This document shows, piece by piece, positions 16,150 to 61,600 of a stretch of 64,000 bases of DNA. The first letter of the stretch is position 1. Every line of letters begins with the position of its first letter. The position numbers were made by a program, and so were the translations under genes. Source of the stretch: Octopus sinensis (taxonomy: Eukaryota). The notes beneath the pieces are model-generated. The model was not told the DNA's origin. It made no database searches and worked only from the letters and a program-made list of their open reading frames with translations. Location of the stretch: contig NW_021832273.1 of assembly GCF_006345805.1 (NCBI RefSeq), positions 99,733 through 163,732 on the forward strand, written 5' to 3'.

Positions 16150-16299
16150 ATGTCTGGACGTGGTAAAGGTGGCAAAGGAGGAAAGAGTGGTGCAAAACGA
16201 TTTCGAAAGATATTAATTGACAATATACAAGGAATTACTAAGCCAGCAATAAGAAGACTATGTCGAAGAGGGGGTGTTCAAAGAATTTCTGGAAAAATT
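16150..16299 (+). pseudogene. H4: Histone H4 codons 1-50 fused in frame to family A' ORF1
   Basis: Identical except R>Q to the start of H4 at 39004; only ~12 nt of H4-like 5'UTR upstream and no H4 promoter. Confidence 0.92.
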
Positions 16300-19200
16300 C
16301 ATGCAATTACAAGATTGGCTCGAGGAGGACCTCTTCCCAACGAAAAGGTTCCTGATGCGGACGGTTGGCATACCGTGGGGAAACCCAAACGTGTTGCCAG
16401 CCGTCCTTTTAATAGTTTAGGTACTGGGTGTGTGTCTGCGCAGGTAGATGCACACCCAAAGAAGACTGCTCGCGCCGGGGGTAGAATTACCTTCGGCGTG
16501 GTGGCTAGACTAGAAGTCTTTCCCACCAGTGGAAAGGCCTCGGTCATAAAGATCCTGGGGACGCTTGACTCTATACAGCCATCTAGGCGGTATAGAGTCC
16601 TGAAGAGGGAGCCCACCCAATTCCTGCTTGGGTGGGAGAAGAAGGAGGACTTTTTCAGCTTTAAAGGAGAGCTGGAGAAGTCCAGCCCGTTCGGTCCTGG
16701 CATGCATCGGCTTGTCAGGATTGAACGAAAGGTAAGGCAGGTAAGAGTCCTGCTCCTCGGGGTCCCCCGGGACTTCGAGGATAATGACCTTTTAGGACAC
16801 ATACAGCGGGAGTACCCCAGTGCCTCTGCCCTTGCACGCTTCAAGCAGGGTAACCGCCCTCTTGAAGTGGTGGAGGTCATCCTGGGATCTCATGCGGAAG
16901 CCGAGCGCCTAGTACTTCTGGGTACTAGGATCGGCTACGTCAGGCTTCGTGCTGTCCGGCCCCGCCCGAAAGCCACCCAATGCTTTCGGTGTCAGGGGTT
17001 CGGACACATAAGCACGAAGTGTCCGGAGAAGGCGAAATGCCTAATCTGCGGTGGGGAGCATGGTCGCAAGACATGCCCCTCACCATCTATGGTGAGGCAG
17101 TGTGTCAACTGTGGTAAGTTAGGACACACTGCCAACTTCAAGGGTTGTCGTAAGTTCAAGGAGGCAACCCGACAGGTTGGTGGGGATGTAATCCCGAAGG
17201 TAAGTCGCCCCCCTAGCGTCGCGGCCCCCGCGCAACCAACCGGCAAACAGGTAAAGCAGGCCAAACCTCCCAAGTCCGCTTGGGTGGCGAGGCCTGTGAA
17301 GCCTGCAAGCCACCGCACCCCTAGCGTCGCGGCCTCAGCGCCAAAACCTGGCAAACAAGCAAAGCAGGCCAAACCTCCCAAGTCCGCTTGCGTGGCGAAG
17401 CCTGTGATGCCTGCAAGCCACCGCACCCCCAGCGTCGCGGCCCCCGCTCCACAACCTGGCAAACAGGCAAAGCAGGCCAAACCTCCCAAGTCCGCTTGGG
17501 TGGCGAAGCCTGCGAGCCACATTGCTAGCGGGTCGGTACCGCCGTCGCCGACAAAGCTGGCAAAGCGGGTGAAAGCATCCGAGTCAGCTCGGATGCCGGA
17601 AGCCTGCAATGCCCTCCGAGTCGGCTACAGGTGACACCGCCCAGCAAAACCTGGGGCCGAAAAGGCTTCCTCCATACGTGGAGATGCCATTGCACTCACC
17701 CCCTTGCGAGCGTGTGCCGCAGGACAGTGTTAGTCCTGCGGACATCCTGGTGGTCAACGAAACAAAGTTAAAGCAGGATCGGTACGTAGTTGATGGCTAC
17801 AACTGCTGTCACATACCCTGGAAACAGGGGTCAACATGTGGCACTGGAACTAGCCTCTTATACAAGCCGTACCTTGCTCTCCGGAGCTCAGGTTTATGTT
17901 CTTGTAGCCTATGTGAATTCCTCCAAGTGAGGATTCGCATAGGTAATTTAACATTTTACCTAGGGGCGATGTATTCGAAGAACTTTACGGCGTGTTCTTG
18001 GCACGTACGGGAGTTCTTTGGAAAGCATCCGAAGGCGATGGTCGTTGGGGACCTGAATGCCAAGCACCAAGAGCTCGGTTTCAGGGTAACCAACGCGCAT
18101 GGTTTGGCTCTCAAGACGCTGGTTGAAGACCTCGGGTTGGAAATCAGATCTTCAAGCGAGCCAAACCACATCGATTCGCGGGGAGGACAAGACTGGCTAG
18201 GCCTTGCTCTGGTCAGCCCCGGGATGCTAAATTGGGTTAGTAACACAATCTTATTGCCTGATATTGGGAGCGACCATCTGCCTCTATTGCACGAACTCCG
18301 TGAGCCAGTTCCTCAAAGGGCCCCAGGATACTTTGACCTCCGGTCCGGTTCCTGGGCCAACCTGGAGAGGTTCATGGCCAGCAGGTTGCCCTCACTCCTG
18401 GTGGGGAATACCTGCGCCAACATACGAGAGTTGGAGGCGTTAGATAATGGAATCAATGCTGCCCTGTCTGATTATATGCGAGATAATTTCAAACAGAACC
18501 CAGTACAGGGCCAGGCACATTCCACGCTCCCGTACCGGGTGCTAAATAAAATTAGATTCAAGCGCCGGCTGTCCAGACTGCGGGACAAATGCGTCTACCA
18601 GGAGAACCGTGTTTGGTTTCGCGGCTGGATCAGCCGGATTCAGAGGGAGATCCGGAGGGAAATCCGTGAACACGAAAGTTCACGGTGGGAGCGGGCCTGC
18701 CAAAGAGTGGACCCGCGCTTTCCGGACTTCTGGAAACAACTGAAGAGCCTGTCGGGGAGAGGGGAGGCAAAGTCAGTGCGCCTTAAGCGCTCTGATGGAA
18801 CCCTCGTCTCGGACCCGGTTGAGGTGGCTGATATATTTTCAACCCACCTCAACAACATCTCGGGAACTGACGGAAGTCAGTTCGTAGAGACGTCGTCTTT
18901 TGTTACTATCCAGGAGGTATTGTCTTGGGACAAGCGCTGCCAGCTGGACATATCAAGGGTCGATGCAGGCGAAGTTTCCGAAAGGGAGATCCTGGCAGCG
19001 ATCTCCCGAAGTAAGAACACCGCGGCGGGGCTAGATCGGATCCCTATGTCCATCTTCAAAAAGGCCCCGCCGTTGTTGATCACGGCCTTACAGGTTTTGT
19101 TTAGCGGGAGCTTGCGACTTGGGATGATTCCTTCCAGGTGGAAAGTGGCTGAGGTAATCCTCATTGGAAAACCTGGGAAGCCTCATGAAGTCCCCGGGGG

Positions 19201-20400
19201 ATATATGCCCATTTCCTTGCTTCCCGCTATATCTAAAATCCTAGAAAGGATCATGCACCGAAGGCTCCTGGAGGAGCTGACGGTGGTTGACGCCCTCCCG
19301 GAGTTCCAATGGGGCTTCAGGGAGGGTCGTTCATGTGGAGACTGCTTGTGGAAGGTGTCTTCCGAAATGAAGAACGCCCTCCAGAAAAGGGAGTGTGGTA
19401 TGTTAGTTAGTCTTGACATAGAAAAGGCCTTCGACTCGGTGTGGCACGACGGCCTGCGGAGTTCCCTCGCCACGTGTGGGGTTTCTCCGTGTCTAAGGCG
19501 CTGGCTGTCGGGGTTCCTCGAATCTCGCGGTCAGGTCGTGCGACACCAGGGGGTCTTTTCTAAAGTCGCAACAGTCTTTCGCGGGGTCCCTCAGGGTTCT
19601 GTGCTGAGTCCCACACTGTTTAATATCTTTATGGCCTCTGCACCTATGCCAGTCAATGCTCGTACTGGAATGGTGATCTATGCAGACGACATTATCCTCT
19701 GGGATCAGTCGATGAAACCAGAGTGTGCGTGTCGTAGGCTACAGGTTGCTGTGGATGAACTTGTAAACTGGTGTGGGAGTAGGGGTCTAAAGATGTGTGC
19801 GGACAAGTGCAGTGTCCTTAAAGTCTGTAAAAGGACGAGGGGTTACACTAATTTTATCCCTAGGTTATCACTGGACGGGTCAGCGATCGCTGTAGTTGAT
19901 CGGACGATCTACTTGGGCATGGTCTTCAAGCAGTCAGGTAAGTTCGATGATCACATTGCACGTACTAAAATGCGTGCAATGCAGCGATTAGGCGCGTTGC
20001 GTGCTTTCCACTTGAGGAGAGGTGCCTGGTTCCGTGTGTTCAACGCCATGGTGTTACCCGTGTTAACCTATGGCGTGCACGCTTGGCACTTCTGCGAGGA
20101 CAGGGAGAAGTACGTTGACGCGCTTAAGAAAGTAAGAAGACGAGCCATCCGGCTAGCCTATGGCTTAGGATGGCGTGATGAGCTCTCCAACGCCCAGGAA
20201 TTGTCCCTCAAAGGCCTTCCTGAGGTCCTGGAGAAGATAATGACTGGGTGGCAGGTAAGACGGTAAGTCCTAACCTGTGGTTGTGTAGAGAGGCGAGCGT
20301 GTGTGCTGGACCGAAAAGGCAGGAATGCCGAAGGTCTCCTTATGTTACCTCACTAACAGCCTCTCTAACTAATTATTTAAAATGAAAATTTTCCTTCCCA
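16300..20400 (+). mobile_element. Family A' LINE (Jockey/I/R1-group-like): 5'-truncated ORF1 with 3 CCHC-type knuckles, ORF2 APE-RT (ORF 17609-20266)
   Basis: [26 protein letters not shown]; GDLNAKH, SDHLP, QGSVLSP, YADD; 3' end abuts GAACTTGCAAA. Confidence 0.93.
17211..17520 (+). repeat. 108-bp (36-aa) coding tandem repeat, about 3 copies, in A' ORF1
   Basis: Units start at 17211, 17319, 17427: [34 protein letters not shown]. Confidence 0.9.
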
Positions 20401-20411
20401 GAACTTGCAAA

Positions 20412-21886
20412 AACAGAATTGTTGTGAGAATCCAGCTGCATGGTAAAGGAAAATAAAGAAAAAATGGTCAAGAATAAACAAAATCTCGCATCAATCAAAG
20501 CTTGCTCCAAAGTTCAAAAACGAACAGCGGCCAAGCCACAGCCCTTTTGCGAACCTGAATATCCCACCGAACATCCGAACCCTACTGTGGCTCAAAAACA
20601 CAGTGAGACCCAATTCTATCAGACGACAACTGAGGCTAACAGCTCAAACCTCACATATTCTCTGAGTATCGAAAACTCGGCACTTGGAAAGATCAAGAGG
20701 TTTAACCTCCTCTCCAAGTCTCCAACTGCTTCCAAAGCCCGGATAACCTTACAGAAGTCCGGCACCTTCATTCTAAAATTCAGTTCGCCAGAGGATGCTG
20801 CTGCGTTCAAAGCAGAGCTGACTAAATCGAATATGTTTGGCGAAGGCGGCCATAAACTTGCCTCAATAGCTGAGAAGGCCTCAGTCTTGGTCCTTAAAGG
20901 AATCCCTCATTGGATCTCGACAGAGGATCTTAACCTCCACTTGAGAGAAAGTCTAGAATCGGACTTCAAGTTCGAAAGATTCTCTCGCAATGGAACCGAC
21001 ATGCCTATCGGCAGACTCACGCTGGATTCCAGAGCCGAGGCCAGCACCCTCATCCGCTTTGGAATAACTGCGGGCTTCAGCCATATCCGCTGCGAATGGC
21101 ACAAGCCCTCAGCAACGAGATGCTTCCGTTGCAATCAGTTTGGACATACGTCCTACAGATGCTCCGAAAAACTCCGTTGTCTCCTCTGCGGTAAAGAACA
21201 CAGGCACCAAAACTGCCCGAGTTCCAAGCCAAAACCGAATGTCCCAGCTGCAAAAACTTGCATTAATTGCAAGAACACTGGGCACTTGGCGTGCTACGGT
21301 GGATGTCCATCTGCCAAAGCAGCAACAGCAGCCTCAAGGGCTGCGAAGAGCCCACAGACAAAAAGCCCAGTACGCTGGGTGAAAGCCGAACCGATAAAAT
21401 CAGTCTGGACAAAAGCGGCTCCCCGAAGTCCGTCCAAAGTCGATGTCTCTACTCAGACGTCGCCGGCCCCCAGCACACTCACAAACTCGAAGACAACCAC
21501 TAATGAGTGCCATAACTCAGAAGTGGTCCGCTCGGCTGTCCCTCATAAGAGGAGAAAAACCCACCGTGACAAAGCTTTGTCACAAAGAGGTCCCCACTCG
21601 GATCAGGACCTACACAACAGAGATTCCCAACTGGAATGCTTCCGCTGTTGTGTAGGAGCCCTGACCCTACTTGGAGTGGATATGGATATGCTGCAAGAGC
21701 TCCTGCTAGAAGGGAGCAATTCAGCAACATAGCCACCATTAACTCTGGCTCACGACAGATGAATTGGACGCAAGCTCAGAAGAGTTCAGTTGTCTTTGCA
21801 TCAGTCTCGTCCTATCACCGTCCTTAATTCCTGTCACTTTCTCTCTCTCTGTTAATTACAATAAACTTCATTCATTCATTCATTCA
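20412..21886 (+). mobile_element. ORF1-only non-autonomous family B element (intact 430-aa ORF 20440-21732)
   Basis: Gag-like CCHC ORF followed directly by the family B 3'UTR, AATAAA and (TTCA)n; flanked on both sides by GAACTTGCAAA. Confidence 0.93.
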
Positions 21887-26229: not shown

Positions 26230-26335
26230 TTTTGTGGATAATGGCACCTAAAGTTAGCATAAAGGCCCGAACGGATTTGCTTTTAGCCTTTGACCGTACT
26301 TTTCCTCCTTTTCCTCTTGAAGACATTATACTCTG
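26230..26335. pseudogene. H2B 5' remnant (+, ATG 26241) joined tail-to-tail to an H2A 5' remnant (-, ATG 26326)
   Basis: Near-exact matches to H2B start at 44404 and H2A start at 38848. Confidence 0.88.
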
Positions 26336-29189
26336 AATGAATTGAATTAAGTTTATTGTAAATTAACAGAGAAAGAGAAAGTGACAGGAATTAAGGACGG
26401 TGATAGGACGAGACTGATGCCAAGGCATCTGAACTCTTCTGAGCATGCGTCCAATTCATCTGTCGTGAGCCAGAGTAGGTTCATTAATTTTTGACGAGTG
26501 CAGAGAGTTACCGGTCGATAAACAGGTCGGTCACTTGGGATCTCCTCCGAAAAGACCGGATAGATTTCTCAATGACCTGTCGTATCTCCAGGGACCTGTT
26601 CTCCGCCCAGCTTGGGACGGGGCCTCGTGGGTCAAGCCTATAAGCTAGCTTCAGCGCGTAGCGTCGGATTTTCTCGCATTTCCTGTAAATTTTCTCGAGA
26701 TTTTTCGAGTAGTACCATGCTTCCATTCCGTACAGCAAGGTGGGTAGGATGGTTGCATGGAACACAAAGAGGAATGTCTTAGGATCCAGATGCATGCTTC
26801 TTAAGAGGCAGAGAGCCGCAATGGCTTTTGCTCTCTTTTTCTTTACATGCAGACGGTAGCCCGAGTTAGCGTCGATCGTAAGCCCCAGGTAGCGTATGCA
26901 GCTGGGGCGCCCAATTTCGGCTAGGGGCCCAGAGCTCTGATCTGATGACTTTTTCGAGTTGATTTGTAGGAAAGCGGATTTATCCATTGCTAACGAGAGC
27001 TGTTTGCTGGCGCACTACTCCTTTATTACCTCAATGTAGGTGAAAAGCCTCTTTTCTGAGGCCATCACATCTTTTGAGGTGTCAAGGATAAGGACGTCAT
27101 CAGCATAGAGAAGTAGATTTGTCCGAGGGTCCCGGGGCAAAGGGAAACTGCTCATAACCAGATTGAAAAGAAGTGGACTGAGGCAGGACCCCTGCGGAAC
27201 CCCTCTTCGGAGTGAAATATCTCTTGAGCGGAAACCAGATTCGGAGATAAACGAGTATCTTTCGGAGAGAAAGCAGCGCAGCCAGAGGTAGAGTTCCGCT
27301 GTAGGCACACAGAGTTGGATCCTTTCCAGTAGGTCTCTGTGCCAGACGGTGTCGAAAGCTTTTGAAATGTCCAGACATACAAGAGATAGAGTTTCTTTAA
27401 ATTCCATTGCTCTCGAAATCATGGACTGTACCGTTATGAAACAGTCACTGCAGCTACGCCCAGAACGAAAACCCCATTGCTGCGTTAGCAGCACTCTCTT
27501 TTCTTCGGAGTGGAAGTCAAGGCGCTTGGCCATGATTTTTTCCATCAGCCTTGAGATAGTTGGGATTAGGCTTATGGGACGATAGCTGCTAGCGAGGTTC
27601 ACAGGCTTCGCAGGCTTTTTGATCATCCGGACCTCTGAGATTTTCCATTTTCCCGGCACATGGCCCCACTTGAGACTTGCCGTAAACAGATCCGCAAGGA
27701 ACACATGTAGGTCTTCGGAGGCTTCCTTAAACAGCCGCATCGGTATTTTGTCGTGGCCTGGTGCGTTGCCTTTTGACGAACGGATGGCCCAGGTCACCTC
27801 TGCAGTGGTGATCGGTTGATGTTCCGACGACAGTGCGCACGGCAGTGGCTCCGACTCCCTGCCTTGCGGCGTTTTTGGATTGGCCTCCTGGATAATGGCC
27901 AGGTGTTCTGCGAAAATGTTCGGGATTTCCTGTGGCGAGGCGGGCATACCAAATTGGTTGCACAGCCTCGGGGGTGAGGATTTTCCTTCGAGGTTAGCCA
28001 CTTTGCGGAAACAGTCCCAGAAATTTGGGTTTCTGTAGTCTAAGTTTTGACAAGCCTTCTGCCATTTCCTGGCAGTTTCCAGCTTTGTCACGACTTGAAC
28101 TTCATAGCCAATTTTCGAGATCATGTTTTTAAGTCTACCCCTGTCAGTGGGGTCAACACAGCGTTTGAGTTTGTTTCTCAGCCGCTTTCTCTTATTGAGG
28201 AGAAGTTTCACCTTCGTGCTTAGAGTAGATCTTCGTAGGCGGTCAGCACACGGCACTGTTCCGTACGATTTTAGATAATGGCGCATGAAATTTGTTAGCT
28301 CATCGCTTGCGTAGTCGATGTCGCTGGCAGTGTTGTAGTATGTAAGGTGAGTGTTCACAAGTAGGAATGCACTCATGGAGCTTCTATAGTGTGGCCAGTT
28401 GATTCTTGAAAGACTGTAGCCTGTGGATACGTGTTCTTGTTTAATAGAGCTAGAGTGAATTTTGATCTCCATAGGAAGGTGATCACTTCCGATATCGTCA
28501 AGCACAGTAGGCTTTTCCATAATGGTAGCGATCGAGTGAGAACAGATGCACAGGCATAGGTTGTCCTCGCCGTAGGGCGATTGGTGGTTCGGCACTTCAG
28601 ATGTCCTGACGAAAACACCAAGTTTGTCAGTGATCTTCTTCAGTGTTCGACCATCCTGGTTGCTTAATCGACATCCAAACGCCGTATGCTTCGAGTTTAG
28701 GTCTCCGATAAGAAGGCAGTGAGCGGTATTTGAGAAGAAATCGTTAATCAGACTGGTGCAGGGAGGAAGATATTTGCAGTATATTCCACCGATTTTTAGC
28801 CAGAAAGATTCTGTTTTCACCTCAAGGGATAGGAATTCACACAGTGTCCCCTCGATGATAGTGAGGTTACGGACTTTGAGATTTTCGCTGTAGAAGATGC
28901 TCGAACCAGTCCCAGGCGTAGAGCAGCTACCCCATTTAAGATCCACTGACCGGTAGCCTGGGAGCTGGTAAGAGTCATCTTCTTTGAGCTTCGACTCGTT
29001 GACGACAATAATGTCTGGATGGCCGCTGTTCACCATCTCAACGAAGTCGTGATGCCGTCTCTTGATAGAACGGGCATTCACAGCGATTATTTTGATCGTG
29101 GCTATGTTGGTGAATTACTCCTTTCTAGCAGGAGCTCTTGCAACATATTCAAACTTATTCCAGCCTTGGTCAGGGTATCTACCCAACGG
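26336..29189 (-). mobile_element. Family B LINE, 5'-truncated within ORF1, near-complete ORF2 (27015-29081 plus 26508-26987), inserted at the H2A start
   Basis: APE and RT motifs; 12-bp TSD CAGAGTATAATG (26324-26335 and 29190-29201 on the minus strand); (TTCA)-type tail. Confidence 0.93.
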
Positions 29190-29320: not shown

Positions 29321-29332
29321 TCTGAATCAGTT

Positions 29333-30832
29333 GCATCGTCTGAATCGTCAGAAGGGCTGCGAAGAGCCCACAGACAAAAAGAATCCAGTTGCATGGTAAA
29401 GGAAAATAAAGAAAAAATGGTCAAGAATAAACAAAATCTCGCATCAATCAAAGCTTGCTCCAAAGTTCAAAAACGAACAGCGGCCAAGCCACAGCCCTTT
29501 TGCGAACCTGAATATCCCACCGAACATCCGAACCCTACTGTGGCTCAAAAACACAGTGAGACCCAATTCTATCAGACGACAACTGAGGTTAACAGCTCAA
29601 ACCTCACATATTCTCTGAGTATCGTAAACTCGGCACTTGGAAAGATCAAGAGGTTTAACCTCCTATCCAAGTCTCCAACTGCTTCCAAAGCCCGGATAAC
29701 CTTACAGAAGTCCGGCACCTTCATTCTAAAATTCAGTTCGCCAGAGGATGCTGCTGCGTTCAAAGCAGAGCTGACTCAATCGAATATGTTTGGCGAAGGC
29801 GGCCATAAACTTGCCTCAATAGCTGAGAAGGCCTCAGTCTTGGTCCTTAAAGGAATCCCTCATTGGATCTCGACAGAGGATCTTAACCTCCACTTGAGAG
29901 AAAGTCTAGAATCGGACTTCAAGTTCGAAAGATTCTCTCGCAATGGAACCGACATGCCTATCGGCAAACTCACGCTGGATTCCAGAGCCGAGGCCAACAC
30001 CCTCATCCGCTTTGGAATAACTGCGGGCTTCAGCCATATCCGCTGCGAATGGCACAAGCCCTCAGCAACGAGATGTTTCCGTTGCAATCAGTTTGGACAT
30101 ACGTCCTACAGATGCTCAGAAAAACTCCGTTGTCTCCTCTGCGGTAAAGAACACAGGCACCAAAACTGCCCGAGTTCCAAGCCGAAACCGAGTGTCCCAG
30201 CTGCAAAAACTTGCATTAATTGCAAGAACACTGGGCACTTGGCGTGCTACGGTGGATGTCCGTCTGCCAAAGCAGCAACAGCAGCCTCAAGGGCTGCGAA
30301 GAGCCCACAGACAAAAAGCCCAGTACGCTGGGTAAAAGCCGAACCGATAAAATCAGTTTGGACAAAAGCGGCTCCCCGAAGTCCGTCCAAAGTCGATGTC
30401 TCTACTCAGACGTCGCCGCCCCCCAGCACACTCACAAACTCGAAGACAACCACTAATGAGTGCCATAACTCGGAAGTGGTCCGCTCGGCTGTCCCTCATA
30501 AGAGGAGAAAAACCCACCGTGACAAAGCTTTGTCACAAAGAGGTCCCCACTCGGATCAGGACCTACACAACAGAGATTCCCAACTGGAATGCTTCCGCTG
30601 TTGTGTAGGAGCCCTGACCCTACTTGGAGTGGATATGGATATGCTGCAAGAGCTCCTGCTAGAAGGGAGCAATTCAGCAACATAGTCACCATTAACTCTG
30701 GCTCACGACAGATGAATTGGACGCAAGCTCAGAAGAGTTCAGTTGCCTTTGCATCAGTCTCGTCCTATCACCGTCCTTAATTCCTGTCACTTTCTCTTTC
30801 TCTGTTAATTACAATAAACTTCATTCATTCAT
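29333..30832 (+). mobile_element. ORF1-only family B element (430-aa ORF 29393-30685) inserted upstream of an H3 start
   Basis: 12-bp TSD TCTGAATCAGTT (29321-29332, 30833-30844); near-identical to the copy at 20412. Confidence 0.93.
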
Positions 30833-30863
30833 TCTGAATCAGTTCTGCCTGAAATAAAAAAAT

Positions 30864-32460: not shown

Positions 32461-32463
32461 TGC

Positions 32464-36756: not shown

Positions 36757-36846
36757 TCTTTGTAGCGACGGAAACATTTTTTGTTTTAATGGGAGCTCTT
36801 TTTTGTCCTTTTGTGCTAACTTTAGGTGCCATTATTAACAAAATTT
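36757..36846 (-). pseudogene. H2B: H2B 5'UTR plus about 25 codons (ATG 36832) fused to the family A leader
   Basis: MAPKVSTKGQKRAPIKTKNVSVATK followed directly by [15 protein letters not shown]. Confidence 0.9.
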
Positions 36847-39800: not shown

Positions 39801-39830
39801 CTGAAACTGTCCTGTCTGAAATAATAAAAT

Positions 39831-39914
39831 ATGGCTAGAACTAAACAAACTGCTCGAAAATCTACTGGAGCAAAAGTTCCAAGGAAACAATTGTCTGCAA
39901 AATCTGCTCGCAAG
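39831..39914 (+). pseudogene. H3: H3 N-terminal tail (Met to K27) fused to family A (also 52942-53024 and 58558-58641)
   Basis: Identical to the start of intact H3 at 49236 up to GCTCGCAAG. Confidence 0.93.
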
Positions 39915-42900: not shown

Positions 42901-44378
42901 TCCAGCAGATATTGTCGTGGGACAAGCGCTGCCAGCTGGGCATATCAAGGAACGATGCAGGCGAAATTACTGAAGCGGAGATTCTGGCAGCAATCTCCCG
43001 AAGTAAGAACACCGCGGCGGGTTTGGATCGGATCCCGATGGCCATCTTTAAGAAGGCCCCGCCGCGGTTAATCACTGCACTAAAGGTTTTATTTAACGGG
43101 AGCTTGCGACTTGGGATGATTCCCTCCAGGTGGAAAGTGGCTGAGGTAATCCTTATCGGAAAGCCCGGGAAGCCACATGATGTCCCCGGGGGATATAGGC
43201 CCATTTCCTTGCTCCCCGCAATATCTAAAATCCTAGAAAGAATTATGCACCAAAGGCTCCTGGAGGAGCTGATGGTTGCAGACGCCCTCCCTGAGTTCCA
43301 ATGGGGCTTCAGGGAGGGCCGCTCATGCGGGGACTGCCTTCACAAGGTGTCGTCTGGTATGAAGAACGCCCTCCAGAAAAGGGAATGCGGTATTTTAGTT
43401 AGTCTCGACATTGAAAAGGCCTTCGACTCGGTGTGGCACGACGGCCTCCGGAGTTCCCTTGCCACGTGTGGGGTTTCTCCGTGTCTAAGGCGCTGGCTGT
43501 CGGGGTTTCTTGAATCTCGCAGGCAGGTCGTGCGGCATCAGGGGGTCTTTTCTAAAGTCGCAACAGTCCTTCGCGGGGTCCCTCAGGGCTCTGTGCTCAG
43601 TCCGACACTATTCAATGTGTTTATGGCCACTGCGCCTATGCCAGTCAATGCTCGTACTGAAATGGTAATCTATGCAGACGACATTATCCTCTGGGATCAC
43701 TCAATGAAACCGGAGTGTGCGTGTCGTAGGCTTCAGGTTGCTGTGGATGGACTTGCAAACTGGTGTGGGAGTAGGGGTCTGAGAATGTGCGCGGACAAGT
43801 GCAGTGTCCTTAAAGTCTGTAAAAGGACGAGGGGTTACACTAATTTTGTTCCTAGGTTATTGCTGAGCGGGTCAGCAATCGCTGCAGTTGATCGGATGAC
43901 TTATTTGGGCGTGCTCTTTAAGCCGTCCGGTAAGTTTGATGATCACATTGCACGTACGAAAATGCGTGCAATGCAGCGATTAGGTGCGTTGCGTGCTTTC
44001 CGCTTGAGCAGAGGTGCCTGGTTCCGCGTGTTTAACGCCATGGTGTTACCCGTCTTGACCTATGGCGTCCACGCTTGGTACCTCTATGAGGACAGGGATA
44101 AGCATGTTGACGTGCTTAAAAAAGTAAGAAGACGAGCCATAAGGCTAGCCTATGGCTTAGGATTCCGGACTGAGCTCTCCGACGCCCAGGAATCATCTCT
44201 CAAAGGCCTCTCTGAGGTCCTAGAGAAGATTATTTCTGGATGGCAGGTAAGGCGGTAAGTCTTAACCTGTGGTTGTGTGTAGGGAGGCGTGTGTGAGATG
44301 GAGACTGAAAAGGCAGCGATGCCGAAGGTCTACTTAGTTAGTTTTTAACTCCCTTAACTAATAATGTTTTTTCCCCCC
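39915..44378 (+). mobile_element. Family A LINE, near full length: ORF1 to 41649 (two small indels), ORF2 41646-44258 intact APE-RT
   Basis: Three zinc knuckles; SVNARSL, NETK, GDLNAKH, SDHLP, QGSVLSP, YADD; 3' end joins AAACTTGCAAA upstream of H2B. Confidence 0.95.
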
Positions 44379-48200: not shown

Positions 48201-49203
48201 TACCACCCAGACCTATTGGACAGGGTTCGCAGTTGTGAGCCAACGAGAGAGGCATTTCTCTGGCTGAATTGCTTTCTTTCTAACCGTATCTCCTTTGTGT
48301 CCCAGTCGGGCTTCCACTCCAGAGATATACATCTCCGAAGGGGTGTCCCGCAGGGATCCAGTCTCAGCCCGCTGCTGTTCAACCTTGTGATGAGCAGCTT
48401 CCCTTCCTTCCCCAATCCGCGGACAACTTTCCTCTTGTACGCTGATGACGTCCTCATTATGGATATTTCAAAAAGCCCCGCACTCTCGGAGCACCGTCTT
48501 TCCAGCTACATCGGAATGATAGAGACCTGGTGTCGGGGTAAACAACTATCCATTGCTATGGACAAGTCGGCGTACCTTGAAATTAACTCACGGCGCAAAT
48601 CGAGGCAAGAGCCTGAGATTCTCAGAAGACTTCCCCGCCCGAGCCACATTCGCTATCTGGGCTTGACGGTAGACTCTAACTCGGAGTACTTACTGCACAT
48701 CACCCAAAAAAGGAAAAAGGCCGTTGCGGCCCTTCGCTTCCTGAGGGGTATGCATTTGGCCCCCGACACTTTTCTGTTTGTCTTTCGCGCGACGATTCTC
48801 CCAAGTCTCTTGTATGGGATGGAGGCGTGGCACTATTCAAACCAATTCGGAAAAATATTGAAAAAATGTGAGAAGATCCGTCGCTATGCGTTAAAGCTAG
48901 CGTACAGATTGGATCTACGCGCCCCGCTACCCAACTGGGCAGAGGAGAAATCTCCACTAATCGAGAAAGTCATCCTTGATTCCATCCGAACTTTTCGTCG
49001 GCGGTCTCAGGTGACCGATCTTTTCGTGGATCGCGTCTGAAATTCAATCAGAGAGTGACTCTTCAAAAACCCGGCTCATATATTCCCTTAGGACGAATCT
49101 CGGCAGAGCTCGACTGTCTTCGCAGTCGTCTCGTTTAACCTCGTCCAACCTTTTTACTTAGTCTCTGTTTTACTTACAATAAAACTTTCCATTCCATTCC
49201 ATT
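45262..49203 (+). mobile_element. Family C LINE, full length: ORF1 45293-46434 (frameshift near 45640), ORF2 46431-49040 intact (869 aa), (TTCCA)n tail
   Basis: Splits ACTAGCCT^GAAACTG of the H3 5' region with an apparent 3-bp TSD CCT. Confidence 0.95.
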
Positions 49204-49235
49204 CCTGAAACTGTCCTGTCTGAAATAAAAAAAAT

Positions 49236-52422: not shown

Positions 52423-53024
52423 ATTATACATAATTTTTTTAATAAAATACATTGATATTCCTTACAAATTAACCAGATAAAAATTAGCAATTTCATAAAT
52501 TACTAACTAGCTACCAAACGACGGTGAAATACTACGATTGCTTTTTTAATTGGTAAGAAATCTTGTTGAAATAACAAAAAGTATATTTATACAGTAAATT
52601 AGAGTTATATCGTTTGAAAAATTTATTTTTTTCTAATATTTTATTTTTTTGCATCTGTTTATAATTATGTTTATTTAGAGAATTATTTGCGAGTGGACCC
52701 CAGAGCTCCGGCCAATCGGGCAATGGACGATTATTTCTCCGAACATGGAGACAAATATCGTGGAAGACCTAGATCCACTCTTCCGACAGTTCTTGAAAGG
52801 GATCTCAAACTTCATGACAAAAGTTTCAAAAACTGGGACGACCTAGAATCTTTACGGGATCTCGCCCGCAACAGAAGGGCATGGACAAGGATGGTCCAGA
52901 AGATTGTTTCGCTGAAACTGTCCTGTCTGAAATAATAAAATATGGCTAGAACTAAACAAACTGCTCGAAAATCTACTGGAGCAAAAGTTCCAAGGAAACA
53001 ATTGTCTGCAAAATCTGCTCGCAA

Positions 53025-56000
53025 TTGTCTGCACTAAGAAGACTATGCAGAAGTGGAGGTGTTCCCGCCTCGCTCTCCCAGAAGGACAAGACGTTCAGTG
53101 TGCCACTACGATGAATTGCCGGAGCCGTGTTCACCGCCACGCGCTTCCGGCTATTCTAGTGGTGTCTTTAATTTTCTAGCGAAAAGCAGGAAGGAGAAGT
53201 CGAAGCCTGGACCCTCCCAGGTGGGTTCAGCACTCACTGGAGACACTTCTTCCTCTGCTCCCCCTATGGCTGGTGTCGGGGGAGCTGCAGGTGCAACTGG
53301 TTCTGATCGTTTGGTATCCACCACAACCGCACAGCATGCTGGTTCGCCACGTGTTTGCGGTTTGTCTAGTGGTACCAAACCCAGCCTAGGTAAGTCAATT
53401 AATGCCAACGGGTGTCGTCTCCTGAGGCCGTCCCGGTGGGTACGGCAGGAAATAAGGTTGCCCTTGAGGACGGTTGGTACACGGTGGGGAAACCCAAACT
53501 TGCGGCTGGCCGTCCAACCCCCCCTAATGTTGTAGGTACTGGGTGTGTGTCGATCAGGCGGATGCACACCCAAAGAAGACCACTGGCGCCGGGGGCAGAA
53601 TACTTCGGTGCTGTGGTACTTGAGGTCCTCCCTAAAGTGGAAGCTTCGCAGCGGATAAAGATTCTGTACGGCACCTAACGACTTAGGGAGTCCTCCTGCT
53701 CAAGGGCTGCTCGGTCATACGGATAGTCACCCCAAGAGAGTCTGGCTCCTGGAACGAGCCCGAGGAACTTTCTTCCCTGGCGGCGGGTGGGTGGTGAGGC
53801 CAAAGATCTGTAGTGTATCTAGAGTGGGAAGGCCTCGGTCATAAGATCTTATTACGTTAGACTTATCCGCCTTCAAAGCTGTATAGAGTCCTGAAGAGGG
53901 AGCCCACCCAATTCCTGCTTGGGTGGGAGAAGGAGGATGACTTCTCCAATTTCAAAGGGAGCTGGAAAGTCAAATCCGTTCGGTCCTGGCATGCATCGGC
54001 TTGTCAGGATCGAACGTAGGTAAGTAAGGTAAGTGTCCTCCTCCTCGGGGTTCCTCGGGACTTCGAGGATAATGACCTCCTAGGTCATCTGCAGCAGGAG
54101 TACCCCAGTGCCTCTGCCATTGCACGCTTCAAGCAGGGTAATCGCCCTCTTGAAGTGGTGGAGATTACACTGGGATCTCCTGCAGAAGCTGAGCGCCTGG
54201 TACTTCTTGGTACCAGGATCGGCTACATTAGGATGAGAGCTGCCTGGCCCCGCCCGAAAGCCACCCAATGCTTCGGTGTGCAGGGGTTCGGGCACATCTC
54301 CACAAAGTGCCCGGATAAGGCGAAGTGCCTTATTTGCGGTGGGGAGCATGGTCGCAAGACGTGCCCCTCACCATCCAAGGAGAGGCAGTGTGTCAACTGT
54401 GGTAAGTTGGGACACACTGCCAACTTCAGAGGTTGCCCCAAGTTCAAGGAGGCAACCCGAAAGGTAGGTGGGGATGTAATCCCAATAGTAAGTCGCCCGC
54501 GTCGCGTCGCGCGCCCTGCGCCAAAACCTGGCAAGCAGGCGATACTGGCCAAACCTTCCAAATCCGTTGGGTGGCGAAGACAGTGGAACCTGTGAGCCAT
54601 GCTACGTGTGGGTCGGTGCAGCCTTCGCCGACAAAGTTGGCAAAGCAGGTGAAAGCTTCCGAGTCCGCTTGGTTGCCTAAGCCGGCAATGCCTTCTGAGG
54701 CGGCTAACGGCGGCGCCGTCCGGCACAACCTGGGGCTGAAAAGGCGTCCTCCATACGTGGAGATGCCATTGCACTCAGCCCCTGGCGAGCGTGTACCGCA
54801 GGACAGTATTAGTCCTGCGGTGCAATTATGCGTTTCCCTATTAAAATTTTGTAGGGAGATGAATTGCAGTGTAGAGGAAATGCTACACTGCAACGTTGCC
54901 GAGGCCAAGAAGATCCTTGGCGAAGAACCGATATGATGCTCAACATCATATCGGTGAACGCGCGTTCCTTGGAAGGAAAAAGGACGCCGTTCAGAGGATG
55001 TTGGCCACCACGAGTGCGGACATTCTGGTGGTCAACGAAACGAAGGTAAAGGGGGGTCCGTACGTAGTTGATGGCTACAACTGTCGTCACATACCCTGGA
55101 AACAGGGGTCAATATGTGGCACAGGAACTAGCCTCTTCTACAAGCCCTACCTTGCCTTGCAGAGTCCAGGTTATGTTCATGTAGCTTGTGTGAATTCCTC
55201 CAAGTGAGAATTCGCAAAGGCGAGTTAACATTTTACCTAGGTGGAAAGTACTCGAAGAACTTTACGGCGTGCTCCTGGCACGTACGGGAGTTCTTTGAAA
55301 AGCATCCGAAGGCCATGGTTTTTGGGGACCTGAATGCCAAGCATCAAGATCTTGGTTTCAGGGTAACCACTCGCATGGTTTGGCTCTGAAGACGCTGGTT
55401 GAAGACCTCGGGCTGGAATCCGGACTTCGAGCGAGCCAAACCACGTCGACACGAGGGGAGGACGTGACTGGCTAGGGCTTGCTCTGGTCAGTCCCGGTCT
55501 TCTAATTGGGTTAGTAAAACTATTTTATTGTCCGATATTGGGAGCGACCATCTGCCTCTATTGCACGAACTCCGTGAGCCAGTTCCTCAAAGGGTCCCAG
55601 GATACTTTGACCTCCGGTGGGTTCCTGGGCTAACCTGGAGAGTTTCATGGCCAGCAGGTTGCCCTCACTTCTGGTGGGGAATACCTGCGCCAACATACGT
55701 GAGTTGGAGGCGCTTGATAATGGAATCAATGCTGCCCTGACTGATTACATGCGAGATAATTTCAAACAAAACTCAGTGCAGGGTCAGGCACATTCCACGC
55801 TCCCTCACCGGATCTTAAATAAAATTAGGTTCAAGCGCCGGCTATCCAGACTACGGGACAAATGCGTTTACGAGGAAACCGTGTTTGGTTTCGTGGCTGG
55901 ATTAGCCGGCTTCAGAGGGAGATCCGAAGAGAAATCCGCGAACTCGAAAGTTCGCGGTGGGAGAGGGCCTGCCGAAGGGTGGACCCTCGCTTTCCGGACT

Positions 56001-57642
56001 TCTGGAAGCAGTTGAAGAGCCTGTCGGGGAGAAGGGGGGCTAAGTCAGTGCGCCTTAAACGCTCTGATGGAACCCTCGCTTCGGACCCGGTTGAGGTGGT
56101 TGAAATACTTTCAGCCCATCTCAATGGCATCTCGGGAACTGACGGAAGTCAGTTCGTAGAGACATCGTCCTTTGATACTGTCCAGCAGATATTGTCGTGG
56201 GACAAGCGCTGCCAGCTGGGCATATCAAGGAACGATGCAGGCGAAATTACTGAAGCGGAGATTCTGGCAGCAATCTCCCGAAGTAAGAACACCGCGGCGG
56301 GTTTGGATCGGATCCCGATGGCCATCTTTAAGAAGGCCCCGCCGCGGTTAATCTCTGCACTAAAGGTCTTATTTAACGGGAGCTTGCGACTTGGGATGAT
56401 TCCCTCCAGGTGAAAGTGGCTGAGGTATCCTTATCGGAAAGCCCGGGAAGCCACATGATGTCCCCGGGGGATATAGGCCCATTTCCTTGCTCCCCGCAAT
56501 ATCTAAAATCCTAGAAAGAATTATGCACCAAAGGCTCCTGGAGGAGCTGATGGTTGCAGACGCCCTCCCTGAGTTCCAATGGGGCTTCAGGAGGGCGCTC
56601 ATGCGGGGACTGCCTTCACAAGGTGTCGTCTGGTATGAAGAACCCTCCAGAAAAGGGAATGCGGTATTTTAGTTAGTCTCGACATTGAAAAGGCCTTCGA
56701 CTCGGTGTGGCACGACGGCCTCCGGAGTTCCTTGCCACGTGTGGGGTTTCTCCGTGTCTAAGGCGCTGGCTGTCGGGGTTTCTTGAATCTCGCAGGCAGG
56801 TCGTGCGGCATCAGGGGGTCTTTTCTAAAGTCGCAACAGTCCTTCGCGGGGTCCCTCAGGGCTCTGTGCTCAGTCCGACACTATTCATGTGTTTATGGCC
56901 ACTGCGCCTATGCAGTCAATGCTCGTACTGAAATGGTAATCTATGCAGACGACATTATCCTCTGGGATCACTCAATGAAACCGGAGTGTGCGTGTCGTAG
57001 GCTTCAGGTTGCTGTGGATGGACTTGCAAACTGGTGTGGGAGTAGGGGTCTGAGAATGTGCGCGGACAAGTGCAGTGTCCTTAAAGTCTGTAAAAGGACG
57101 AGGGGTTACACTAATTTTGTTCCTAGGTTATTGCTGAGCGGGTCAGCAATCGCTGCAGTTGATCGGATGACTTATTTGGGCGTGCTCTTAAGCCGTCCGG
57201 TAAGTTTGATGATCACATTGCACGTACGAAAATGCGTGCAATGCAGCGATTAGGTGCGTTGCGTGCTTTCCGCTTGAGCAGAGGTGCCTGGTTCCGCGTG
57301 TTTAACGCCATGGTGTTACCCGTCTTGACCTATGGCGTCCACGCTTGGTACCTCTATGAGGACAGGGATAAGCATGTTGACGTGCTTAAAAAAGTAAGAA
57401 GACGAGCCATAAGGCTAGCCTATGGCTTAGGATTCCGCTGAGCTCTCCGACGCCCAGGAATCATCTCTCAAAGGCCTCTCTGAGGTCCTAGAGAAGATTA
57501 TTTCTGGATGGCAGGTAAGGCGGTAAGTCTTAACCTGTGGTTGTGTGTAGGGAGCGTGTGTGATGGAGACTGAAAAGGCAGCGATGCCGAAGGTCTACTT
57601 AGTTAGTTTTTAACTCCCTTAACTAATAATGTTTTTTCCCCC
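53025..57642 (+). mobile_element. Family A LINE copy with many indels
   Basis: Collinear with 39915-44378. Confidence 0.92.
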
Positions 57643-58034: not shown

Positions 58035-58641
58035 CACTTTAAAAATAATTGTTTTATTTATTTGTTCTTTAAATAACTATTTCAACAATCCAAATGCAAC
58101 TAGTAATTGTCCCTTTGGCATTCGAGATCTCCGCAGCCTTTGTCCCGCAAACATCCAAGTTCTTAAACACATCTGCCTCCTTATCGCTCGGAGAAACATG
58201 GATGCAAGCGAATCTTCTTGCTAAGACAGAGGATCTCTGGTACAATCATGCGCGGCAACACGCAAGCTATTCTTTTGACCGGATCTGATCGTTCTCTTTC
58301 TTGTTTTTTCTTTAATTAGTTCACTAGTAATTTAGTCTGTAATCTCGAAAAATTCATAAATTTAAGCAATAGTTACAATTATTTGATGGTGCTGATAAAA
58401 TATTATTTTAAAAATATTTAATTTTTTAATTTTAAAAATGATGAGCAAAAAATTTTCGGAATGATACTTTTTTTCGAAAAAATTCGGAATAATGTTGTTT
58501 AACTATATAAAACAAAAATAACTAGCCTGAAACTGTCCTGTCTGAAATAAAAAAAATATGGCTAGAACTAAACAAACTGCTCGAAAATCTACTGGAGCAA
58601 AAGTTCCAAGGAAACAATTGTCTGCAAAATCTGCTCGCAAG

Positions 58642-61600
58642 CTGTCTGCACTAAGAAGACTATGCAGAAGTGGAGGCGTTCCCGCTTCGCACTCCCCGGA
58701 GGACAAGACGGTTCAGTGTGCCACTACGATGAACTGCCGGAGCCGTGGTTCACCGCCACGTGCTTCCGGCTATTCTAGTGGTGTTTTTAATTCTTTAGGT
58801 CAAAGCAGGAGGTCGAAGCCTGGACCCTCCCAGATGGGTTCAGCACTCACCGAAGACTCTTCTCCCTCTGCTCCCCCTTTGGCTGGTGTCGGGGGAGCAG
58901 CAGCTGCAACAGGTACTAATTGTTTGGTAGCCACGACAACCGCACAGCATGCTGGTTCGCCACGTGTTTGCGGTTTGTCTAGTGGTGCCAAACCCAGCCT
59001 AGGTAAGTCAATTAATGCCAACAGGGTGTCGTCTCCTGAGGCCGTCCCGGTGGGTACGGCAGGAAATAAGGTTGCCCTTGAGGACGGTTGGTACACGGTG
59101 GGGAAACCCAAACGTGCGGCTGGCCGTCCAACCCCCCCTAATGTTTTAGGTACTGGTGTGTGTCCGATCAGGTGGATGCACACCCAAAGAAGACCACTGG
59201 CGCCGGGGGCAGAATTACCTTCGGTGCTGTGGCACGACTTGAGGTCCTCCCACAAGTGGGAAGGCCTCGGTCATAAAGATCTTAGGTACGTTAGACTCTA
59301 TCCAGCCTTCAAAGCTGTATAGAGTCCTGAAGAGGGAGCCCACCCAATTCCTGCTTGGGTGGGAGAAGGAGGAGGACTTCTTCAGCTTTAAGGAGAGCTG
59401 GAGAAGTCCAGCCCGTTCGGTTCTCTGGCATGCATCGGCTTGTCAGGATTGACAAAAGGTAAGGCAGGTAAGAGTCCTGCTCCTCGGGGTCCCCCGGGAC
59501 TTCGAGGATAATGCCTTTTAGGACACATACAGCGGGAGTACCCCAGTGCCTCTGCCCTTGCACGCTTCAAGCAGGGTAACCGCCCTCTTGAAGTGGTGGA
59601 GGTCATCCTGGGATCTCCTGCGGAAGCCGAGCGCCTAGTACTTCTGGGTACTAGGATCGGCTACATCAGGATGAGAGCTGCCTGGCCCCACCCAATGCTT
59701 TCGGTGTCAGGGGTTCGGGCACATCTCCACAAAGTGCCCGGATAAGGCGAAGTGCCTTATTTGCGGTGGGGAGCATGGTCGCAAGACGTGCCCCTCACCA
59801 TCCAAGGAGAGGCAGTGTGTCAACTGTGGTAAGTTGGGACACACTGCCAACTTCAGAGGTTGCCCCAAGTTCAAGGAGGCAACCCGAAAGGTAGGTGGGG
59901 ATGTAATCCCAACAGTAAGTCGCCCGCGTCGCGTCGCGCGCCCTGCGCCAAAACCTGGCAAGCAGGCGATACTGGCCAAACCTTCCAAATCCGTTTGGGT
60001 GGCGAAGACAGTGGAACCTGTGAGCCATGCTACGTGTGGGTCGGTGCAGCCTTCGCCGACAAAGTTGGCAAAGCAGGTGAAAGCTTCCGAGTCCGCTTGG
60101 TTGCCTAAGCCGGCAATGCCTTCTGAGGCGGCTAACGGCGGCGCCGTCCGGCACAACCTGGGGCTGAAAAGGCGTCCTCCATACGTGGAGATGCCATTGC
60201 ACTCAGCCCCTGGCGAGCGTGTACCGCAGGACAGTATTAGTCCTGCGGTGCAATTATGCGTTTCCCTATTAAAATTTTGTAGGGAGATGAATTGCAGTGT
60301 AGAGGAAATGCTACACTGCAACGTTGCCGAGGCCAAGAAGATCCTTGGCGAAGAACCGATATGATGCTCAACATCATATCGGTGAACGCGCGTTCCTTGG
60401 AAGGAAAAAGGGACGCCGTTCAGAGGATGTTGGCCACCACGAGTGCGGACATTCTGGTGGTCAACGAAACGAAGGTAAAGGGGGGTCCGTACGTAGTTGA
60501 TGGCTACAACTGTCGTCACATACCCTGGAAACAGGGGTCAATATGTGGGGCACAGGACTAGCCTCTTCTACAAGCCCTACCTTGCCTTGCAGAGTCCAGG
60601 TTTATGTTCATGTAGCTTGTGTGAATTCCTCAAGTGAGAATTCGCAAAGGCGAGTTAACATTTTACCTAGGTGGAAAGTACTCGAAGAACTTTACGGCGT
60701 GCTCCTGGCACGTACGGGAGTTCTTTGAAAAGCATCCGAAGGCCATGGTTGTTGGGGACCTGAATGCCAAGCATCAAGATCTTGGTTTCAGGGTAACCAA
60801 CTCGCATGGTTTGGCTCTGAAGACGCTGGTTGAAGACCTCGGGCTGGAAATCCGGACTTCGAGCGAGCCAAACCACGTCGACACGAGGGGAGGACGTGAC
60901 TGGCTAGGGCTTGCTCTGGTCAGTCCCGGTCTTCTAAATAGGGTTAGTAAAACTATTTTATTGTCCGATATTGGGAGCGACCATCTGCCTCTATGCACGC
61001 GAACTCCGTGAGCCAGTTCCTCAAAGGGTCCCAGGATACTTTGACCTCCGGGTGGGTTCCTGGGCTAACCTGGAGAGTTTCATGGCCAGCAGGTTGCCCT
61101 CACTTCTGGTGGGGAATACCTGCGCCAACATACGTGAGTTGGAGGCGCTTGATAATGGAATCAATGCTGCCCTGACTGATTACATGCGAGATAATTTCAA
61201 ACAAAACTCAGTGCAGGGTCAGGCACATTCCACGCTCCCTCACCGGATCTTAATAAAATTAGGTTCAAGCGCCGGCTATCCAGACTACGGGACAAATGCG
61301 TTTACGAGGAGAACCGTGTTTGGTTTCGTGGCTGGATTAGCCGGCTTCAGAGGGAGATCCGAAGAGAAATCCGCGAACTCGAAAGTTCGCGGTGGGAGAG
61401 GGCCTGCCGAAGGGTGGACCCTCGCTTTCCGGACTTCTGGAAGCAGTTGAAGAGCCTGTCGGGGAGAAGGGGGGCTAAGTCAGTGCGCCTTAAACGCTCT
61501 GATGGAAACCTCGCTTCGGACCCGGTTGAGGTGGTTGAAATACTTTCAGCCCATCTCAATGGCATCTCGGGAACTGACGGAAGTCAGTTCGTAGAGACAT

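Follow-up and report, generated by a model that had tools for sequence, protein, structure and literature searches.

The window, which comprises the last 64 kb of Octopus sinensis contig VCDQ01009797.1 (assembly GCA_006345805.1), holds a histone gene cluster interrupted by long interspersed nuclear elements (LINEs), several of which begin with the 5' end of a histone gene. Mapping by tblastn with canonical histones identified two H2A(-)/H4(+) pairs, one intact H3 gene and three H2B genes, along with numerous N-terminal histone fragments. Between the histone genes lie LINEs with a first open reading frame (ORF1) containing CCHC zinc knuckles and a second (ORF2) encoding an apurinic/apyrimidinic endonuclease (APE) and a reverse transcriptase (RT). 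For comparison, 12 more loci were analyzed, of which 10 are other stretches on 8 other contigs (L001-L007, L009 and L013, with L012 being the reversed L001) and two overlap the window (L010 and L011). The host genes that serve as landmarks are as follows.

38489-38848 (-) and 39004-39312 (+): native divergent pair H2A/H4, the host reference genes
51601-52422: second H2A(-)/H4(+) pair
44404-44767: first H2B gene, with further H2B starts at 57667 and 63112
49236-49646 (+): intact host H3, which with its 5' untranslated region (5'UTR) spans 49206-49646 and lies immediately 3' of the tail of LINE B

The LINEs of family A in the window, A1 to A5, carry heads in which a histone 5'UTR leads into the AUG and opening codons of the histone; across all copies examined, heads comprise the first 20-52 codons, joined in frame to ORF1. 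Positions are given in nucleotides (nt) of the window and protein lengths in amino acids (aa).

16138..20401 (+): A1, H4 head; the 5'UTR piece begins 12 nt before the ATG
16150..16299 (+): A1 head, H4 codons 1-50; DNA identity to the intact H4 genes (39004 and 52114) is 98%
16300..16332 (+): A1 leader, a divergent duplicate of H4 codons ~32-43, in frame with ORF1
16150..17634 (+): H4(1-50)::A1 ORF1, a 494-aa open frame with a CCHC zinc knuckle
17609..20266 (+): A1 'ORF2', 885 aa, with APE and RT; it starts with ORF1 C-terminal sequence
32923..36832 (-): A2, H2B head; position 32923 is the last of the tail AATAAATTTTTCCCCCC and falls within an H2B downstream spacer in inverted orientation
36758..36832 (-): A2 head, H2B codons 1-25, with a native-looking H2B promoter upstream (36833-36960)
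36619..36635 (-): private 1-nt deletion of A2 (C for CC) relative to 40031-40048, 53139-53156 and 58758-58775
35022..36731 (-): A2 ORF1 from an internal ATG (MSKWRR...), 569 aa; the ATG overlaps the Leu-Cys codons of the H4-derived leader
39801..44378 (+): A3, H3 head; 5'UTR at 39801-39830, H3 codons 1-28 at 39831-39914, then leader, frameshifted ORF1 and tail
52912..57642 (+): A4, H3 head; H3 ATG at 52942, junction CGCAA-TTGTCTGCA
58527..63086 (+): A5, H3 head, behind a native H3 TATA box (58504-58523); the tail is followed by an H2B 5'UTR

The heads are 98-100% identical to host H4, H3 and H2B from the 5'UTR through codon 25-52, and the junctions in the window fall at H4 codon 50, H2B codon 25 and H3 codon 28, the last reading CGCAAG/CTGTCTGCA. 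A sequence-only reading of the window had already described these three fusions, and their anatomy is borne out. The H4 head opens into the 494-aa frame at 16150. The H3 head of A5 is open for 254 aa (58558-59322, +) and that of A3 for 147 aa (39831-40274, +), where sequence comparison confirms that one C is missing (AAACC at ~40267 versus AAACCC at ~58994). The H2B head of A2 enters its leader in frame from the ATG at 36832 (-) and closes after 78 aa; because of the C-for-CC change, the H2B frame leaves ORF1 and the internal ATG at 36731 enters the ORF1 frame. The earlier description of three independent in-frame 5' junctions stands as regards frame and falls as regards independence, since these are three junction types inherited with element subfamilies. 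Nor are the H3 copies independent events: self-comparison identified A3, A4 and A5 as segmental or tandem duplicates, 97-99% identical including their flanks. Points that go beyond that description are the third H3 copy (A4), a leader derived from H3 and H4, similar behavior of other LINE families, and a fixed insertion point before histone genes.

Individual copies are degraded to different extents. A1 is not a fully intact element: relative to A3, ~196 nt are absent at the ORF1/ORF2 boundary, with loss of the endonuclease N-terminus, and the C-terminus of ORF1 is frameshifted relative to family member P0010. At its 3' end, A1 reads ...TTTTCCTTCCCAG, after which AACTTGCAAA opens an H2B 5'UTR; no target-site duplication could be identified around this element. 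The 5' end of the A1 head adjoins 283 bp of the LINE F 3' end in inverted orientation (15854-16136), and a direct copy of this segment lies at 21596-21878. A3 has an ORF2 of 893 aa (41577-44258) and is followed by GG, a 23-nt H2B 5'UTR (44381-44403) and the H2B ATG at 44404. In A4, the junction is 1 nt short, so that the head is out of frame and closes after 31 aa, and an internal deletion lies near 53643/53823. Over 870 nt (39831-40700 versus 58558-59430), five single-base homopolymer indels separate A3 from A5; the two are 98.7% identical there and differ mostly in single-base homopolymer length. The integrity of reading frames in this assembly is therefore not reliable at face value, and some frame breaks in the family A copies may be long-read assembly errors.

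The junctions are not confined to one genomic setting. The H3 join CGCAAG/CTGTCTGCA occurs with the same nucleotides in at least 7 upstream contexts, which include the following.

A3 and A4: behind an RTE-like ORF2 fragment (LINE D)
A5: behind the native H3 TATA box
L003 at 4253 and L013 at 2922: directly behind another A tail
L005 at 9867 and L013 at 7500: behind a native-type promoter
L013 at 7829: in unrelated sequence, with the 5'UTR beginning 12 nt before the ATG

Likewise, the H2B join is found in 3 contexts (window A2, L007 at 6748 and L009 at 1059). The recurrence of the same join at different loci indicates that heads are a heritable part of the element. Two heads lie behind neither a promoter nor a LINE tail, the H4 head of A1 and the H3 head at 7829 of L013, and both begin at position -12, which is 5-10 nt downstream of the LINE insertion point and ~30 nt from the TATA-like box. 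These starts fit cDNA copies of a promoter-driven chimeric RNA, and would place the integration point between the TATA box and the inferred transcription start site. L013 also contains a promoter-head::A-head::A dimer.

The in-frame bias seen in the window also holds beyond it. At L009, an H2B::A fusion in the CC state is open for 403 aa, showing that the frameshift is private to the window's A2. At L004, an independent join of H4(52) to A ORF1 is in frame and open for 146 aa, and a family B copy at L003 has a complete 457-aa frame; with H4::A1 (494 aa) and H3::A5 (254 aa), these are the open frames that start from histone ATGs. We searched all loci with a frame-blind regular expression for histone start sequences and obtained five distinct head-to-LINE joins, namely H3-28/A, H2B-25/A, H4-50/A1, H4-52/A and H2Bvar-20/H3-15 of B. 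Each of the five joins keeps the frame (p = (1/3)^5 ~0.004). When older joins are included (H3-22/H4-33, H4-43/ORF1 body and the B leader duplication), eight out of eight are in frame (p ~1.5e-4); the sole out-of-frame case is A4, which has decayed from an in-frame subtype. The AUGs of the H3 and H2B heads have A at -3 and G at +4, a strong Kozak context, and any transcript including them would thus be translated from there. The putative translation of chimeras from the histone AUG, as proposed in the sequence-only reading, is supported by the in-frame bias, by the open frames at other loci and by this Kozak context. A simpler reason for the bias than a function of the histone tails would be that an out-of-frame strong upstream AUG blocks translation of ORF1. 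The internal ATG of A2 was also considered as the ancestral ORF1 start and was rejected, as the histone frame is continuous with ORF1 in L009, L007, A3-A5, A1 and B.

Between the head and the body of ORF1 lies a leader that is itself built from histone pieces. In A2, the H2B head is followed by AGA CAA CTG TCT GCA and then by CTA AGA AGG CTA TGT CGA AGT GGA GGC GTT. The relevant features are given below.

36743..36757 (-): A2 leader part 1 (RQLSA), H3 codons 19-22, 11/12 nt
36713..36742 (-): A2 leader part 2, H4 codons 34-43; the preceding GCA is H4 codon 33, shared with part 1
45262..49205 (+): LINE B, full length, beginning inside an H4-derived piece, CTATGTCGAAGTGGAGG

In codon register, the leader matches host H4 codons 33-43 at 28 of 33 nt, with the host-specific Cys kept, while shuffled leaders reach a maximum of 21/33; the match to H3 codons 19-22 is 11-12 of 12 nt. 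This H3/H4-derived leader is common to families A and B and is in the ORF1 frame in both. In the window's LINE B, the ORF1-like open frame is the H4 frame, and the frame of its own ATG closes after 19 codons. The L003 copy of B has one intact 457-aa frame from an H2B-type ATG to a complete B ORF1 with zinc knuckles. Its order is MAPKKNSKENAKANTEGQKR (an H2B variant), TKVPRKQLS (H3 15-21), TIRNLCRSGSV (H4-like), a B leader piece, QLSA (H3 19-22, 12/12 nt), IRNLCRSGGA (H4 34-43) and B ORF1. The presence of the H3(22)/H4(33) join in both A and B indicates that it is older than the split between these families. New heads have been placed in front of older ones, giving nested H2B, H3 and H4 pieces.

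A-type tails (...AATAAATTTTTCCCCCC) are followed by the start of a histone 5'UTR within 0-2 nt in 10-11 of 13 independent copies, with junctions at -21 to -27 of H2B, -7 to -22 of H4, -15 to -18 of H3 and -10 of H2A; this position preference was counted in histone-bearing loci. At least five tail types adjoin the 5'UTR start, together covering H2A, H2B, H3 and H4, and the orientation is always that of the gene. LINE B, with an (ATTCC)n tail, lies before H3; a (TTCG)n-tailed family lies before H3 and H2B; C/F elements with (TTCA)n or (ATTCA)n tails lie before H2B, H3 and H2A; and a AAATTTCC-tailed element lies before H4. LINE D, located before H3, probably belongs to the same habit. The insertion point is 21-25 nt downstream of the first T of a TATA-like box, at the 5'UTR start. 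Because the four target sequences are unrelated, recognition looks positional rather than sequence-specific. Homology of the H3 genes behind LINE tails to the native H3 locus continues for >2.5 kb downstream, indicating that the LINEs are DNA insertions and that these genes are not histone retrocopies; on the same ground, we rejected an origin of the genes behind tails as template-jump cDNA copies. The other elements in the window that bear on this position are as follows.

29333-30832 (+): LINE F copy 2 (29321..30844 with its duplications), 430-aa ORF1 and (TTCA)n-tailed 3' end
20402..21886 (+): LINE F copy 1; the first 10 nt are H2B 5'UTR, and the tail is followed by the H2B 5'UTR start GAACTTGCAAAT
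26335..29151 (-): LINE C, with an APE and RT frame at 27015-29081; the tail meets an H2A 5'UTR, with 8 nt left to a truncated H2A start at 26326
39580..39800 (+): LINE D (duplicate at 52691-52911 before A4), the C-terminal end of an RTE-like ORF2, stopping at the H3 5'UTR start

Three insertions at this point are clean. LINE F copy 2 lies between the H3 TATA box (29299-29318) and the H3 5'UTR, with TCTGAATCAGTT repeated exactly on either side as a 12-nt duplication (29321-29332 and 30833-30844). LINE B is a clean insertion between the H3 TATA box (45237-45256; TATA...CTAGC(CT)) and the 5'UTR ((CT)GAAACTG...H3). At L007, a 5'-truncated A element lies between promoter and UTR with a 4-nt target loss.

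Several further observations concern these promoters and elements. A TTCGGAATGATAC(T)n motif, often in several copies, is common to all four native histone promoters (e.g., at 38860-39003, 58440-58526 and in L001). The H3 5'UTR in the window (39801-39830, 49206-49235 and 58527-58557) contains a 14-nt insert, CTGAAACTGTCCTG, relative to the L001 type, and this insert looks like the target-duplication footprint of a lost insertion at the same hot spot. In every tail type, AATAAA lies 20-27 nt before the junction (44360-44378, 49170-49205, 21860-21886 and 26335-26350; L001 at 436 and L005 at 15255). At 21887-22997, 12 nt of H2B 5'UTR (GAACTTGCAAAT) are followed by an RT-bearing frame, apparently another LINE with a UTR-only head. 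The N-terminus of F ORF1 (20440-21732 and 29393-30685), ...ACSKVQKRTAAKP, is faintly similar to the H2B N-terminus (STKGQKRAPIK) and may be an old H2B head. The C-terminus of LINE D ORF2 (...RDLARNRRAWTRMVQKIVS) lacks a stop codon and a 3'UTR, and its frame continues through the UTR to a TAA. At 26209-26343, an H2B start (26241, +, 6 codons) meets an H2A start (26326, -, 21 codons) head to head, and a LINE tail stands directly before the 5'UTR of each of these colliding starts.

Domain searches place the elements among the APE-type LINEs. RVT_1 (E 1e-36 to 1e-38) and Exo_endo_phos(_2) were detected in A1, A3, B and C, and zf-CCHC in the ORF1 of A1, A2 and B. Constant tails, many 5'-truncated copies and small target duplications or deletions are insertion signs of target-primed reverse transcription. 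The closest relatives of ORF1, and the only ones recovered in database searches that included an exhaustive one with the ORF1 core, are remote and of X-element/jockey type; the database relatives of ORF2 are ~26% identical, and those overall ~26-38%. An exact look-up of the H4::A1 frame and a search for a protein containing the junction gave no match in the databases searched. APE-type target-specific LINEs belong to the R1 and Tx1 clades (PMC4640811), and the known targets of target-specific LINEs, spliced-leader exons among them, were listed by Kojima & Jurka in 2015 (PMC4640811). Histone genes are without mention in that target list and in a 2022 paper on transposons that target small RNA genes, and our literature searches retrieved no description of a histone-targeting, histone-associated or histone-fused LINE.

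Taken together, these LINEs occupy a fixed promoter-proximal point, carry heritable, rebuilt heads and keep the heads strictly in frame with ORF1. Reasoning from sequence, we think it likely, though well short of certain, that they are promoter-proximal, histone-cluster-specific LINEs translated from captured histone AUGs, and that a guild of APE-type LINEs with CCHC ORF1 proteins, made up of A, B, C/F, the (TTCG)n-tailed family and probably D, has specialized on the multicopy variant histone cluster. The proposed translation from the histone AUG has support from the statistics and from the anatomy of the elements. We propose a plausible cycle as follows. Transcription of an element behind a histone promoter would begin at the histone start site, ~12 nt 5' of the AUG. 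Initiation by ribosomes at the strong histone AUG would yield a histone-tail::ORF1 chimera, and only lineages with the head in the ORF1 frame would make ORF1 protein and propagate. The head-bearing RNA would then integrate at another promoter of the same histone type; as the carried 5'UTR matches the target, the 5' join would be seamless, hence the heads in a 'native' context and the L013 dimer. The outcome would be 'promoter-head::LINE-tail/UTR-histone gene' units and tandem arrays. A new head might arise by either of two routes. In the first, 5' transduction, the cDNA would attach by its 5' end to a point within a histone gene lying upstream, and the DNA in between would be lost; the window contains a tandem unit of the form expected from this route, H2B-spacer-H3 promoter-H3(1-28)::A/H2B. 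In the second, the reverse transcriptase would switch template onto a histone mRNA. A long target duplication as the origin of heads was unsupported, since in the copies seen the type of the head differs from that of the downstream gene. Targeting by promoter geometry or by the initiation complex is our working idea.

A number of points weigh against this explanation. No observed copy is demonstrably complete: A1 has its internal deletion, and A3-A5 carry many 1-nt indels, which are possibly assembly errors. ORF1 has in-frame internal Met codons, and in A2 an internal ATG opens ORF1 after a 1-nt change, so that translation does not strictly require a head. The independence of the eight joins was judged from sequence alone, and Lys/Ala-rich codon repeats could bias microhomology joins to one phase. 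No shared motif was found at the H3, H4, H2B and H2A insertion junctions, whose common feature is the distance from the TATA-like box, and start sites were placed from TATA spacing alone. Heads match local histone alleles, which means that gene conversion is active and could spread junctions without retrotransposition. Finally, the sample consists of ~190 kb from one genome, selected for histone content.

Among the alternatives, the one that survives best is a narrower version of the explanation above, which we consider possible though on balance improbable. It holds that the head serves transcription only, by providing initiator or downstream promoter elements or a good 5'UTR, that the histone tail on the ORF1 protein is a tolerated passenger, and that frame is kept so that the unavoidable histone AUG makes no overlapping upstream reading frame. 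It would account for the UTR-only heads (10-12 nt of H2B or H3 UTR) on the F copies and the element at 21887, and for the window's LINE B, which has no coding head yet lies exactly behind the H3 TATA box. The free exchange of head types (H2B, H3 and H4) with lengths of 20-52 codons argues against one specific protein function, and the first 150 aa of A ORF1 are of low complexity and variable. Nothing speaks directly against this version; the conservation of H4 codons 33-43 in A and B over ~25% divergence could nonetheless hint at a role at the protein level.

It is unlikely that the fusions are accidental by-products of LINEs residing in a recombining array, in which deletion, unequal crossing-over and gene conversion make the joins, frames are a matter of chance and nothing is translated from the histone AUG. 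Such processes do operate here: A3, A4 and A5 arose by segmental duplication, heads carry synonymous variants of local H3 alleles, pointing to gene conversion, most copies are broken, and rearrangements are many, as in the head-to-head H2B/H2A starts (26241/26326) and the inverted F piece (15854-16136). However, chance does not readily yield in-frame joins in five of five frame-blind and eight of eight total cases, complete 457-aa and 494-aa frames from histone ATGs, or nested heads that hold frame through 3-4 successive joins in two LINE families; heads in non-histone contexts that start at -12 also argue against it.

Far less probable is the formation of chimeras de novo, with the reverse transcriptase jumping from LINE RNA to abundant histone mRNA at each insertion and heads not being inherited. 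Heads do begin at or near the presumed mRNA 5' end, and the tandem tail-head layout resembles end-to-end template jumps. The identical junction nucleotides in at least 7 (H3) and in 3 (H2B) contexts, the H3(22)/H4(33) join common to A and B, and the native genomic rather than cDNA context of the histone genes behind LINE tails are at odds with it, and template switching may be the first origin of a new head. That the histone::gag fusions are domesticated host genes encoding new octopus chromatin proteins is the least credible of these accounts, for although the open frames are long and combine histone tails with CCHC domains that bind nucleic acids, an APE/RT ORF2 and a LINE tail follow every fusion, the copies are numerous, variably truncated and decayed, and no annotated or conserved protein with the junction was found in the databases searched.

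A bolder extension of the preferred explanation, which we put forward as doubtful, is that the open initiation complex serves as a sequence-independent target, that the tail chimera steers the ribonucleoprotein to the nucleus and the histone genes, and that AATAAA replaces the displaced TATA box. The tails of H2B, H3 and H4 bear known import and chaperone-binding signals and modifiable lysines. The AATAAA of the tails, spaced like the displaced native TATA, could take over its role for whichever histone gene or head follows. If this extension is true, target, promoter, start codon and targeting domain would all come from one host gene family, and AATAAA would keep the displaced histone gene expressed.

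The host histones themselves differ from canonical ones. Their identity to canonical proteins is ~80% for H4, ~79% for H3, ~59% for H2A and ~47% for H2B. No canonical histone 3' stem-loop was found in the 64-kb window and AATAAA lies downstream of the H4 stop codon; thus, on these sequence features, the host histones look like a variant, polyadenylated type. Stem-loop read-through or 3' processing as a source of the tail-UTR junctions was ruled out by the lack of a stem-loop in the window. The variant array is possibly stage- or germline-specific. The host histones are present as many identical copies on at least 9 contigs. In the loci examined, 14 of 35 histone genes (~40%) are split from their own promoters. 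Elsewhere in the window, the spacer between the H2B promoter and H2A contains a Tc1/mariner-like transposase remnant (~37080-37200), and a PHD-finger frame followed by an RT frame at 7640-10728 represents a different LINE type.

Several target-specific LINEs are known: R1 inserts into 28S ribosomal DNA, TRAS and SART into telomeres, and Keno, Mutsu and Dewa into small nuclear RNA, 5S and tRNA genes. The octopus elements are reminiscent of the R1- and Tx1-clade LINEs in combining APE and RT, in occupying members of a multicopy gene family at one position and in one orientation, and in their presumed dependence on host transcription, as well as in their precise 3' junctions, variable 5' truncation and tandem arrays; the likeness is one of structure and behavior. 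They differ in that their target is the promoter-proximal start of polymerase II histone genes rather than an RNA gene, microsatellite or telomere, in that they use four unrelated target sequences, and in that the element protein is fused to a host N-terminus. SLACS, CRE and CZAR and the NeSL elements similarly insert at or near the start of a highly transcribed multicopy gene, so that they are driven by the host promoter and their transcripts begin with a few host nucleotides. Those elements, however, use a restriction-like endonuclease, insert at a specific sequence within a non-coding RNA gene and form no translational fusion with a host protein.

The heads resemble L1 5' transductions and SVA_F1 with MAST2 exon 1, in which a host transcribed 5' end is inherited by a subfamily and the captured 5' end is thought to help expression. 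In the octopus, by contrast, the capture includes a start codon and coding sequence in frame with ORF1, and it is repeated, always from the gene family that also serves as the target. For one point at four histone promoters, the best analogy is offered by Ty3, a long terminal repeat element at polymerase III starts, and by Dictyostelium TRE elements near tRNA genes, whose position is set by the initiation complex and not by sequence. These belong to another element class or use another polymerase, and a role of the initiation complex in the octopus would follow from geometry only. The head-to-tail HeT-A/TART telomeric arrays of Drosophila are alike in that the transcription start of an element directly follows the 3' end of its neighbor; the HeT-A 3' end is a demonstrated promoter, whereas AATAAA as a TATA box in the octopus tails is a spacing observation only. 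The octopus elements would thus work like a combination of the target-specific, host-promoter-dependent LINE mode with heritable 5' transduction.

The finding is real and unusual, and the histone tails may have the role in chromatin or nuclear targeting proposed in the sequence-only reading. If true, our explanation adds a protein-coding polymerase II gene family to the targets of LINEs, with the insertion point set by promoter geometry; the published target lists of target-specific LINEs comprise RNA genes, repeats and telomeres. It would also mean that a retrotransposon takes a promoter, 5'UTR, start codon and N-terminal segment from its own target genes, repeatedly and in frame, which offers a testable answer to how promoter-less LINEs are transcribed and translated. 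For annotation, the results carry a warning that cephalopod gene models labeled 'histone-like' may represent LINE heads. For the biology of the octopus, they bear on how a histone array tolerates the separation of ~40% of its genes from their promoters, and they provide a natural experiment in which histone tails are attached to another protein.

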